NCBI RefSeq assembly: GCF_000142905.1
Contig: NW_013657660.1
Span: forward strand, 1 to 64,000
Direction: 5' to 3'
Length of the DNA stretch: 64,000 nt
Origin: Thecamonas trahens ATCC 50062
Lineage: Eukaryota; Protista; Apusomonadida
Made by a program: the position numbers and the translations under genes. The notes under the pieces were generated by a model. The model saw nothing but the letters and a program-made list of their open reading frames with translations. It was not told the DNA's origin and did no database searches. Below, one piece after another: positions 52,561 to 57,465 of this stretch; position 1 is the first letter of the stretch, and each line of letters begins with the position of its first letter.

Positions 52561-52653
52561 CAGCAGGTGAGCGGGAGACGAGTGCTGTCGTCTGCCAATG
52601 CCACGTGTACGATGGCCTGCTCATCGGGGGGCAGGGAGGTGGGGGGGGGGGGT

Positions 52654-52969
52654 NNNNNNNNNNNNNNNNNNNNNNNNNNNNNNNNNNNNNNNNNNNNNNN
52701 NNNNNNNNNNNNNNNNNNNNNNNNNNNNNNNNNNNNNNNNNNNNNNNNNNNNNNNNNNNNNNNNNNNNNNNNNNNNNNNNNNNNNNNNNNNNNNNNNNNN
52801 NNNNNNNNNNNNNNNNNNNNNNNNNNNNNNNNNNNNNNNNNNNNNNNNNNNNNNNNNNNNNNNNNNNNNNNNNNNNNNNNNNNNNNNNNNNNNNNNNNNN
52901 NNNNNNNNNNNNNNNNNNNNNNNNNNNNNNNNNNNNNNNNNNNNNNNNNNNNNNNNNNNNNNNNNNNNN
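52654..52969. other. Assembly gap
   Basis: N run. Confidence 0.99.
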
Positions 52970-53171: not shown

Positions 53172-54398
53172 ATGGATGCCATGCTTGCACTTGTGACGGT
53201 GTATGCGTGCCTGATTGCCATTGTCATGTACATTATGCTGTGCGGACAGACGTCGTCATTGCCGCCGCTCCGAGCAGCACACCAGTTCCTCACCTCGGGC
53301 CTGTGGCGGATTGTGGGCAAGGGAATGAGGATGGTGTGTGGTGACGGCGTTGATCGGAGTCTTCACTATCTCTTTGCTACCAATCATCGACTTCTCTCTC
53401 TCTTCTATTTGGCCCTCGTTTGGGGTGGTGTCGCCATCTTTGTCCTCTACACCCTCCCTTGGATCCCGAATCCCATCGCTCCTGCCTATCACCTCTACTT
53501 GATTCCGCTGGCAATTGTCCTCCCCAACTACTGCTTCTACAAGGCTGCTCATACTCCTCCGGGCATCGTCGACAAGGACAATGCGCAACCGCTGACTTCT
53601 CGCTATCCTTACGATGGCATCATCTTTGCCCAGAAGTACTGCTCCACCTGCAAGATCACCCGCCCGGCAAGGACAAAGCACTGCTCGCTCTGCGGTGTCT
53701 GTGTCCTCCGCTTTGATCACCACTGCGCGTGGATCAACAACTGTGTCGGAGAGCAGAACCACCGCTGGTTCCTTGCCTTCCTCGCCTCCACCTCGGTCCT
53801 CTGTGCCTACGGCGCTTACCTCTGCACCCTTGTCCTCCTCTACATCATCGAGATGGAGGAGCTCTTCTCGCGCTACGTCCGTGGACCGAGCGGCGAGGCC
53901 ATCCCAGTCTCGTGGGGCGTTGTCTTCAAGTACATGCTCGTCTTCCACGCGCCCATCATCGGCGTCGGCGTCTTTATGGCCGTCATCTCGCTCACCCTCT
54001 ACTGCTTCTTCCTCTACCACCTCTACCTGATCGCCCGCGGAACGACCACCGCCGAGACGTTCAAGTGGTCCGACGCCCGCTCTGACATCGGCTATTGGCG
54101 CTGGCGCCAGAGCGAGATCCGCGCCGACCCGGACCGCCTCGCCGCCGCAAAGGCCCACGCCGCCAACAACCCGGCCCGCGACCTCACCGATGTGCCCGAG
54201 AACGAGCTCACCGACGCAGACATCCTCGCCATGGACCTGCCCAAGTCGCTGGTCAACATCTACAACCGCGGCCTCGCCGCAAACTTTGCCGAGATCATGT
54301 GGCCCAAGTCAATGGTTGCCGCCGAGATCATCACCGAAGCCCAGTCCTCAGCGCGTCCGCGGCCCAAGGGTGTCAAGGGCAAGAAGAAGCGCCGCTGA
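53172..54398 (+). CDS. DHHC palmitoyltransferase (ZDHHC4/Swf1-like)
   Basis: [50 protein letters not shown]. Confidence 0.93.
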
Positions 54399-54444
54399 AC
54401 ACCGGCTGTCGAGCCGCACAGCGGGGACGCTCTGCCAGCCTACG

Positions 54445-54918
54445 CTACCGGCTCCCGAGCCGCCGATTAAACGCCACCACGCGGTGCTCGACCAGATCCG
54501 GGCCGAGATCCAGGGCCACCCGCCGAAGAGCCTTTGCCTCCATCCACGCCACGAGATCGGCGCCAAACCGAGCATACACATGCTGCCGTCCACCCGCCCG
54601 ATGCTTGTGGGCCAGAGTCTTGACACACGACGTCCTCATGATAAACTCCATCCGCTTGGCCAGCGGTCTCGCCACGCATCGGCTGGCCACCCTCCCTCCG
54701 CTCGCCGCCGCCGCCGCCGTCCGAGCACCGGCCAGAGCGCCATTGTATGAGCCCACAATGACATAGTCAGACGCATTGGTCCACCCGACCTTGGCCACTC
54801 CGTTCCCTCCCTCGTCGCAGAAACCATGCGCCACAAGAGCGGCAAGAACATCACCGCTCACGCCGCTCAGCTCGCGCCCGCTTCCGCTCGCCAGCACCGC
54901 TCGCACCGCCCGCAGCAT
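54445..54918 (-). CDS. Standalone group II intron maturase domain-X-like protein with putative mitochondrial presequence (157 aa)
   Basis: LVAHGFCD..TNASDYVIVGSYNGALAG..MEFIMRTSCVKTLAHKHR..VYARFG resembles domain X (cf. LtrA YNSELRG..YLMEYSCLKTIASKHK); begins MLRAVRAVLAS. Confidence 0.72.
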   Translation of the reverse strand: MLRAVRAVLASGSGRELSGVSGDVLAALVAHGFCDEGGNGVAKVGWTNASDYVIVGSYNGALAGARTAAAAASGGRVASRCVARPLAKRMEFIMRTSCVKTLAHKHRAGGRQHVYARFGADLVAWMEAKALRRVALDLGPDLVEHRVVAFNRRLGSR

Positions 54919-55271
54919 GGATTGGCTCAATCGCAGTCGAGTGCCGCCTGCCACCGCTGCCGCTGCCGCCACCACCTTCTAACCCTTAGAGGTACGGTCG
55001 TTCGGACGCGTTGATGTGCGCATCTCGTGGTGAACAACGCGATGATGCTTGACTTCCAGATCACAAGCTTCATGGTAAGCGATCGCGGCCGCGGACCCTT
55101 TGTGCCGCGTGCGGCGTCCATCTCTGCATCGCCGACTGTGTTCTGTTGTGGCAGCCATGAACACATTGTACTACTCTTTTACAACAATTCGTGGACGTTG
55201 CGACGTCTGTGGAGCGTCGCGGAACGCGGCTTGCGCGATGGGCAGATTTGTCCATTGCGTACCGTAAAGGG

Positions 55272-57465
55272 TTAAGAAAACAGCGGATCAGCGACCTCGG
55301 TGTCGAACAGGCCTGGCCCGTCGTCAAAGGCTGAGGCAAGCATGTCGTCAGCGGCGGTGGGCGCGACAGGCTCGGCGGCTGCTCCGCCCGCACCGGCGTC
55401 AAACAGTCCGCCGCCAGCATCGGGGAAGAGCGAGTCGTCCATAAAGTCGCCGCCAGCAGCAGCAGCACTGCTGCCTCCGGCGCCGGCCGATGCACCACTT
55501 CCGGCGGCGCCGGCGCCGTCAAACATCCACGCGTCCGAGCCGGCTGCCTTCGCACCGCCGCCCTTGGCCGACGACGCTCCGTCGCCTGAGACGGCGGCAG
55601 CCGAGACGGTTGTGCCAAACAGGTCGTCGCCTTTTTTGGACGACTTGCGCCGCCGCCGCTTCTTTCTCTTCTTGGATCCAGCATCCGACACAGCCCCTGC
55701 GTCGGTGGGGGCTGGTTCGGGGGCAGGCGCCGGGGCCGCCGCCGGTGCCGGTGCCGGTGCCGACGCTGATGCCGATGCCGACGCTGGTGCTGGTGACGGT
55801 GCCGGTGCCGGTGCCGCCTCCGGTGTCGGTGCCGGTGCCGCAGGCTCTACCTTCTGCTTGCGGGCCGGCCGCGCACGGGCCGACGCCAATGCGGCGGCAA
55901 CCGATGACTGCAGGTCGGCCGCCGGCGCTGCCGCGGGAGCTGCGGCAGGCGCTGCGGCAGGCGCTGCGGCAGGCGCCGCGGCCGGCGTCTCGGCTACGGC
56001 CGCGGCATTCGGGTTCTTCCGCCACGATGAAGCCTTCCACTTACCGGACGCCTGGGCGGCGTTGGCCTTGTCCCGCCACGAAGAGCCCTTGGTGAGCTTC
56101 GGCTTGGCCGACGGCTCCTCCTTGGGCACCAGGACCGGGTCGGGCGTCCACTTGGAGCCAGCAGGCGTCGACTTGACCACCGGCGCCTCGGCCTTCTTGT
56201 CGCCGATGGCGGCGGCGACCTTGGCCTCGCGGGCCTTGCGCTCCGCCTCCTCGCGCTCGGCCTGACGCGCCTTCTCCTCCTGCAGCCGCTGCTCCCACGG
56301 GCGGATCTTCTTGGGCGCCGGTGTGCCCGACGTCGCGCTCGCCGGCGAGCCTGGCGCAGCCTCCTCGGTCGCAGGTTCTGCGGTCGGCGTCCACTTTTTG
56401 AACGTTCGCTTCGGCGGCGGTGCAGCCTCGCGCTTGGCCCCGTCGTCGGCCCCGTGCATGGCCTCCCAGCGAGACCCGATCGAGACGCCGCCGCCGCGTG
56501 GCGGCTGGGCCGAAGCAGGCGCCGCAGCAGCAGGCACAGCAGCAGGCGCCGCGCCGGCTCCAGGCTCGACCCCATGCACATTGAGCGCATGCATCAGCTG
56601 CACAAACGTCACCCGCCCGGCCTCGTCCTCCTCCACCGCCTCGGCCACCGCCGCAATCTCGGCGTCGCTCAGGCCAAACTCGCATGCCGCCACAACGCCG
56701 GCCACGCGCTCGCCCGGAATCGCGCCCTCAAACTCGGTGTCGGCCTCGTCAAACTTGGCCTTGGCCGTCTTCTTCTGCTCAGTCGCCAGCGGCTCACGCG
56801 GCGGCTTGCTGGCGTCGGCCTCGCCCGACGGTGGTGACTCTCCGGAGCCGGCGCTCGAGCCCGAGCACGAGCCCGAGCCCGACGATGAGGACGACGACGA
56901 CTTGTTCTTCTTCTTGCCCTTCTTGACCTTCTTGCCCTTCTTGCCCTTCTTGGCCTTGCTCTTGGCCTTGCTCTTGGCCTTCTTGCCCTTGCCCTTGCTC
57001 TTCTTGGCCTGACGCGCGGCAGTGGCGGCGGCAGCCTTGGACGCGCGGGCCGGCGGCGGCGGCGGAAGGTCGTCGTCCGAGGCCATGAGACCGGTCTCCC
57101 CGCGGGCAAGCGCCCGCCGGCGGGCGGCAGACATACGCTCCTTCTTGCGCGCGAGGCGGCGGTTCGCTCGCTTGGTCTCCTCCGACTCGGACGACTCGGA
57201 ACCGTCACGAAGGGCCTTGGAGCGGGCGGCCTCGGTCTCGAGGAGCACCGCCTCGAGCGAGCGCTTGGCCGCAGCCCGCTGCTCGGCACGGTACGTCAGG
57301 TCCTGCGCAAGGTCCGAGTCGCCCGACGACGCCGACGACTTGCTCGCGCCAGACTCGCCGTCATCTGACCCGTCTGAGTTGAGGAGCATCGAAAGCTTGG
57401 CGAGCCGCGACGCGGTCTTGGCGCGCGCCACCTCCGAGTCGCCCGACGATGACGAGCCGCTGCGG

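Follow-up and report, generated by a model that had tools for sequence, protein, structure and literature searches.

So far, plants are the only lineage in which nuclear maturases derived from group II intron-encoded proteins (IEPs) have been described. These proteins retain the reverse transcriptase (RT) domain, and, inert fragments aside, nuclear genomes otherwise exclude group II introns (2015 review, PMC4424553). One of the plant proteins, nMAT1, serves an intron of nad1 that is spliced in trans (reference list of PMC4424553). The unspliced intron is bound by its IEP via both the RT domain and the thumb, also called domain X (PMC4424553); a thumb alone may not suffice for this task. The ORF in the cox2 intron of Diphylleia codes for a maturase domain without RT (PMC4779616), which makes X-only maturases plausible as working units. 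The thumb also survives inside Prp8. Apusomonads, the sister lineage of Opisthokonta (animals and fungi), include Thecamonas trahens. In this species, nad3 of the mitochondrial genome (NC_026452) is split into two separate parts, and a group II-like structure flanks one of these (Kamikawa et al. 2016, PMC4779616). Here we describe a nuclear gene of T. trahens that codes for little more than domain X. The literature searched (Thecamonas with maturase; nuclear maturases in protists) contains no description of it. What is new is the reading, as the protein itself is already public as a predicted protein with a Pfam tag.

The window, i.e. the whole stretch of 64,000 nucleotides analysed here, opens at a telomere and is part of a nuclear contig in a 28.7-Mb assembly of 131 contigs. 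Positions 1-120 consist of (CCCTAA)n telomere repeats followed by short caaccctagctgatgcctc-type repeats, and a Ty3/gypsy-type pol ORF (L004; protease, RT, RNase H, integrase) is located on the minus strand at ~6942-10253, about 7-10 kb from the telomere. A first-pass annotation, made without database searches, had claimed an ORF of 157 aa at 54445-54918. It is present, on the minus strand, and so are the strings quoted from it, namely MLRAVRAVLASGSGRELS at the protein start, HGFCDE, SDYVIVGSYNGALAG and FIMRTSCVKTLAHKH. The length is counted from the first ATG; the open frame continues up to a GTG at 54975, and a stop just upstream of this GTG closes it. The coding sequence is collinear with its three short homologues and needs no intron. 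The gene occupies a 0.9-kb gap between two others. A convergent DHHC palmitoyltransferase gene (PF01529, E 3e-36) has its stop 46 bp downstream, and a gene for a SAM-domain protein of 1141 aa on the same strand has its stop at 55272, 353 bp upstream. "Among housekeeping genes", as the annotation had put it, is a loosely correct description of these neighbours. A run of N at ~52650-52960, possibly an assembly gap, lies within a long ORF reaching into the DHHC domain, and the 5′ part of the DHHC gene model is therefore uncertain. The base composition of the domain X gene is host-like, as had been claimed (GC 0.665 and GC3 0.73; neighbouring genes, GC3 0.78-0.81). The space that separates the domain X gene from the SAM-domain stop upstream holds a dispersed repeat of ~211 bp (55065-55276). 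The repeat has at least 40 scored copies genome-wide (95 candidates; 79-93% identity) and piles up with variants in the sequencing runs of T. trahens itself. No Rfam match was found for this repeat, which might be a MITE- or SINE-like element. The features of the locus are listed in Table 1.

Table 1. Features of the T. trahens domain X locus (window coordinates).
Feature	Position	Strand	Basis
Stand-alone domain X protein, complete CDS (157 codons + stop)	54445..54918	-	ORF list, sequence, PF01348 44.6 bits
Presequence-like N-terminus, residues 1-15 (MLRAVRAVLASGSGR)	54874..54918	-	Heuristic count, motif scan
Domain X / thumb core, residues 20-127	54538..54861	-	Contains S-C-x-K-T-L-A-H-K-H-R block
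Ala-rich stretch, residues 61-88 (ALAGARTAAAAASGGRVASRCVARPLAK)	54655..54738	-	Alignments; in place of G-x2-NYY
Upstream intergenic region to stop of SAM-domain gene	54919..55271	-	ORF map, minus-strand sequence, repeat copies

Profile, profile-profile and structure comparisons show that the encoded protein is a true domain X. The Intron_maturas2 profile (PF01348), which the first-pass annotation had proposed as a check of this identity, matched with an E-value of 1.9e-11 and 44.6 bits at a cut-off of 20.8. The match is limited to profile positions 69-107 of 140 (39 residues). The three homologues scored 42.7-53.4 bits over positions 12-108, so that all four members are above the cut-off. A search of NCBIfam with the T. 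trahens protein gave no match. When the alignment of the four-member short family (A2) was compared by hhalign with that of seven longer maturases (A3; an RT domain is on record for six of them), residues 20-127 aligned to residues 413-514 of P0006 with a probability of 99.15% and an E-value of 3.8e-19. In P0006, this is the stretch directly after the RT domain. AlphaFold, run on a shallow alignment, gave a model with a pLDDT of 74 and a pTM of 0.71. The best match of this model in the PDB as found by Foldseek was LtrA, with a probability of 0.99 and an rmsd of 2.4 Å over 91 columns but an E-value of only 0.31; the comparison recovered the helical thumb fold of solved intron-encoded proteins. 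By sequence, the profile of the four-member family matched LtrA 423-473 (E 0.016), and the ESM Atlas returned maturase clusters both by features (0.95) and by structure (TM 0.63). A ketosteroid dehydrogenase retrieved by a single-sequence search of PDB sequences (E 0.17) was dismissed as a chance match.

The best-conserved block of the short family is S-C-x-K-T-L-A-H-K-H-R, which is common to true maturases. In T. trahens it reads SCVKTLAHKHR (residues 97-107), and S97, T101, L102 and H106 are invariant in all nine aligned sequences. A second conserved thumb motif, G-x2-NYY (GINNYY and GLINYY in RT-bearing relatives), is replaced in each of the four short proteins. The counterparts are AGARTAAA in T. 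trahens (in longer form AGARTAAAAAS), EEYLNARG, RDCREICV and RDCRELFA. The earlier claim that an Ala-rich stretch takes the place of this motif thus held. Relative to the orthologues, the Ala-rich stretch of T. trahens contains an insertion of 8 residues, and the lowest pLDDT inside domain X, a value of 60, falls on the block 71-80. It is mere speculation that the loss of G-x2-NYY and the variable Ala-rich stretch reflect a lost packing surface against the RT palm and fingers.

The gene is stand-alone and nuclear. Domain X begins at about residue 20 of the protein, Pfam detects no RVT_1 in the ORF, and in the whole 28.7-Mb assembly the domain X gene is the single match to PF01348. No GIIM domain was found across the genome, no group II-type RT anywhere in the 28.7 Mb, no match to group II domain V/VI RNA (RF00029) in the nuclear assembly and no Rfam match at E <= 1 within 54300-55400. 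COX1 (PF00115) was not found in the assembly either, showing that the mtDNA is not part of it. The claims of a free-standing nuclear gene without RT domain and without recognisable intron RNA context are thus upheld by the gene map and these searches. As to a separate gene for an RT partner, the genome contains seven RVT_1 matches, of which five belong to Ty3-like LTR elements and one to telomerase (TERT). The seventh (L008) is weak, below threshold and without any other domain. This candidate was rejected.

A referee may object that RT exons were overlooked and that the ORF merely represents one exon of a longer gene for RT plus X, as in the plant nMATs. In favour of this, the nuclear maturases of plants retain the RT domain (PMC4424553). 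However, the 353 bp upstream are mostly taken up by the dispersed repeat and end at the SAM-domain gene, leaving no room for an RT-coding exon, and the genome offers no group II-type RT that could have been missed elsewhere. Moreover, the transcript of a homologue from another apusomonad codes for a complete protein of 236 aa without RT, and environmental ORFs of the family have their own ML start after an in-frame stop. We consider a missed RT exon very unlikely.

The family is small. A HMMER search of 1.8 billion representatives returned eight proteins at E <= 0.001, three of which are short and clearly closer than the others. No plant protein is among the eight, suggesting a transfer independent of plants, although no tree including the nMATs supports this. 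The first short homologue is a marine orthologue (P0002/P0010/P0011; 61-65% identity) present on five marine-metagenome contigs (L009-L013), Tara included. Its context is nuclear-type; the neighbours are rhomboid and ankyrin genes instead of the DHHC and SAM-domain genes, so that synteny gives no support. The second (P0003, 236 aa) stems from another apusomonad, Manchomonas bermudensis, in whose EukProt transcriptome TransDecoder calls it a "complete" ORF; it has no RT. The third (P0004, 220 aa) comes from a sequencing run. A word-indexed search, whether with the single protein or with the family profile, recovered the identical four clusters and no others, and a scan of JGI metagenomes yielded no further family members. 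The nearest relatives found that do carry an RT are ORFs of plastid introns, with atp and psbC-type genes next to them. Searching with the X region of P0006 retrieved no more than four proteins.

Phylogenetic analysis of the X region groups the four short proteins on a single branch (support 100/97), within which T. trahens pairs with the marine sequence (98/95). A long stem branch (0.88) separates the short family from intron-borne maturases. The maturase panel is too small to name a donor lineage, the source intron is unresolved, and the tree demonstrates only that the four short proteins belong together. Two of the at least four lineages, Thecamonas trahens and Manchomonas bermudensis, can be placed in apusomonads, and the claim of a non-plant lineage held accordingly.

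That the protein has been conserved in its short form in four or more lineages bears directly on a second alternative, according to which the ORF is a decaying NUMT-like fragment or a dead intron ORF that is functionless and open merely by chance. Three points speak for it. GC-rich genomes yield many long spurious ORFs, and several of them overlap this very locus; the Pfam match in T. trahens spans just 39 residues; and there is little direct evidence that T. trahens transcribes the ORF. The ORFs are intact, however, in all four lineages although these differ by up to ~60% in protein sequence. The T. trahens gene and its marine orthologue are identical at 0.67, 0.69 and 0.35 of first, second and third codon positions, respectively (chi-square p 2e-10). 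We report these values instead of the dN/dS that the first-pass annotation had suggested because dS is saturated (dN is 0.40) and no ratio can be computed. Saturated third positions together with conserved first and second positions are the signature of long purifying selection on the domain X frame. Furthermore, the Manchomonas homologue is present in a transcriptome, the T. trahens gene has a host-like composition and no flanking mtDNA or intron RNA, and the environmental copies differ in length only by in-frame indels of 9 nt. Decay is thus very unlikely, and there is little doubt that the domain X gene is a real stand-alone gene.

The 9-nt indel of the environmental contigs L009-L013 sits in a (GCAGGTGTT)n repeat within the presequence-like region. 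A GTT/GTG microsatellite just upstream varies as well.

The thin evidence for transcription in T. trahens consists of short Logan contigs from two RNA libraries. They cover 54527-54692 and 54719-54932 with 0 and 1 differences to the locus, and the one ending at 54932 extends 14 nt upstream of the ATG. Contaminating DNA is a possible source of both. Runs X3 and X4 appear to be genomic DNA, given a contig that spans both the end of the DHHC gene and the domain X ORF. Runs X1 and X2, deposited as "subsurface" and "marine" metatranscriptomes, contain short contigs identical or near-identical to the locus (53600-56000 examined), which might reflect either the presence of T. trahens or cross-contamination.

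The N-terminus fits a mitochondrial presequence, as far as simple heuristics can tell. Residues 1-15 of the T. trahens protein contain three Arg and no acidic residue, and an R-x-L-S motif of the R-3 type follows (R15-E-L-S). All four short proteins start with ML, and those of T. trahens and the marine orthologue with MLR. The acid-free N-terminal stretch bearing Arg or Lys measures 15-39 residues over the four members (23-39 in the three homologues), and R-x-(L/V)-(S/A), again R-3-like, occurs within the first 21 residues of three of the four. Residues 1-18 of the T. trahens model have a pLDDT below 50. The leader of T. trahens is short (~15-17 residues), and ~140 residues would remain after import. 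In the environmental copies, the first in-frame ATG is that of MLRVGIAG. It lies upstream of the start called in the database and after an in-frame stop, indicating that the database start codon was probably placed too far downstream. This assessment rests on simple rules, i.e. residue counts and a motif scan, and not on a trained targeting predictor. There are no localisation data, and import is inferred.

The remaining claims of the first-pass annotation can be judged against this background. A mitochondrial-type presequence is supported in all four members, by heuristic counts and motifs only. Domestication, as opposed to a relic, is supported by four intact lineages in one clade and by the saturated third codon positions. 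A decaying NUMT or intron fragment, which it had named as one of the findings that would refute it, is contradicted by the conservation pattern. The expression check it had proposed returned the two short RNA-library contigs at the locus, possibly DNA carry-over. Its central proposal, a trans-acting mitochondrial splicing factor, remains an inference with respect to localisation, RNA binding and splicing alike.

On balance we favour the view that the locus is a functional nuclear gene that arose from an organellar group II intron protein, retained only the thumb and provides an imported splicing helper, even though the margin over other readings is modest and import, RNA binding and splicing are all inferred. 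The proposed sequence of events is as follows. A gene for an organellar group II intron-encoded protein would have become nuclear and been cut down to the thumb. After synthesis in the cytosol, the protein would enter the mitochondrion by means of its N-terminal presequence. There it may bind a maturase-less and probably fragmented group II intron RNA, and the bound thumb would stabilise the catalytic fold of the intron and thereby promote splicing in trans, like the thumb of LtrA and the plant nMATs. As a target, the split nad3 of T. trahens mtDNA is the best candidate, although neither the intron nor its class has been confirmed here. The splicing role is inferred from the best-conserved residues being those common to working maturases, from the way in which IEPs bind RNA, and from the group II-like structure at the split nad3.

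The most serious competitor is exaptation, i.e. the thumb was kept as an RNA-binding protein for a job other than splicing, for instance in the mitoribosome, in RNA stability or in another compartment. In support of this, the RT part, which normally contributes to RNA binding, has been lost, and none of the four members retains the NYY motif. The long stem branch towards the intron-borne maturases suggests a changed constraint, and the strongly basic charge of the T. trahens protein (K+R 23 vs D+E 11) fits generic RNA binding. On the other hand, the best-conserved block is common to the short family and true maturases, the mtDNA of T. trahens reportedly contains a candidate orphan group II intron (PMC4779616), and the literature searched holds no precedent for another role. 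Exaptation is possible and cannot be excluded.

Going beyond the imported splicing helper, a bolder reading holds that the thumb was transferred to the nucleus in apusomonads independently of plants, stripped of its RT and imported to splice a fragmented, maturase-less nad3 intron in trans. We regard this version as tentative, with the balance tipping slightly against it. If true, it would offer a present-day case, in a lineage close to animals and fungi, of an IEP becoming a minimal diffusible splicing factor, a step that has been postulated on the way from group II introns to the spliceosome.

A conserved RT-less version in apusomonads would show that maturases were domesticated more than once and would point to the thumb as a unit on which selection can act by itself. 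An imported protein of ~140 residues would allow asking for the minimal protein contribution to the folding of a group II ribozyme. The loose published remark that nad3 of T. trahens may be trans-spliced via a split group II intron gains a candidate protein partner and thereby becomes testable. Finally, the gene may serve as a natural model for the step from a cis-acting intron-encoded maturase to a trans-acting general splicing factor, which has been invoked for the origin of the spliceosome.

Comparison with known systems places the protein as follows. LtrA, the IEP of Ll.LtrB from Lactococcus lactis (PDB 5g2x, 8h2h), is a 599-aa RT-X-D-En protein that is encoded inside its intron and also serves mobility. 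In contrast, the T. trahens protein has no RT, D, En or intron, and the CNYY segment of LtrA aligns to a non-conserved stretch of the short family. MatK, encoded in the plastid trnK intron, resembles the T. trahens protein in being a degenerate maturase that has kept domain X and serves several introns (PMC4424553); it was also retrieved as a structural neighbour in the ESM Atlas (TM 0.62). Nevertheless, it is organelle-encoded within an intron and measures ~500 aa, and RT motifs 5-7 can still be aligned in it.

X-only ORFs of organelles, such as those of the Diphylleia rotans cox2 intron (PMC4779616) and the plastid protein P0014 on contig L014, share the maturase domain without RT. They differ in being located on AT-rich organelle DNA within or beside introns and in having no import leader, and P0015, from the plastid cluster of P0014, falls outside the nuclear clade in the tree. 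L014 is a plastid-like metagenome contig of 97.8 kb, on which an X-only ORF of 130 aa without RT (L014:10001-10393), an organelle-encoded counterpart of the minimal architecture, adjoins a psbA fragment, transketolase-type pieces and ycf4.

The plant proteins nMAT1-4 (nMat-1a/1b/2a/2b) also belong to the closest described systems; their genes are likewise nuclear and go back to the IEP of a group II intron. They are imported and act in trans on maturase-less mitochondrial introns, nMAT1 for instance on nad1 intron 1 (PMC4424553), a parallel that is inferred for T. trahens. The plant nMATs have retained the RT and some of them also D/En, whereas the T. trahens protein consists of X only and belongs to an apusomonad. 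In summary, the T. trahens protein is of the same kind, a nuclear intron-derived maturase whose import is inferred, and its novelty lies in the other lineage and in the reduction to the thumb.
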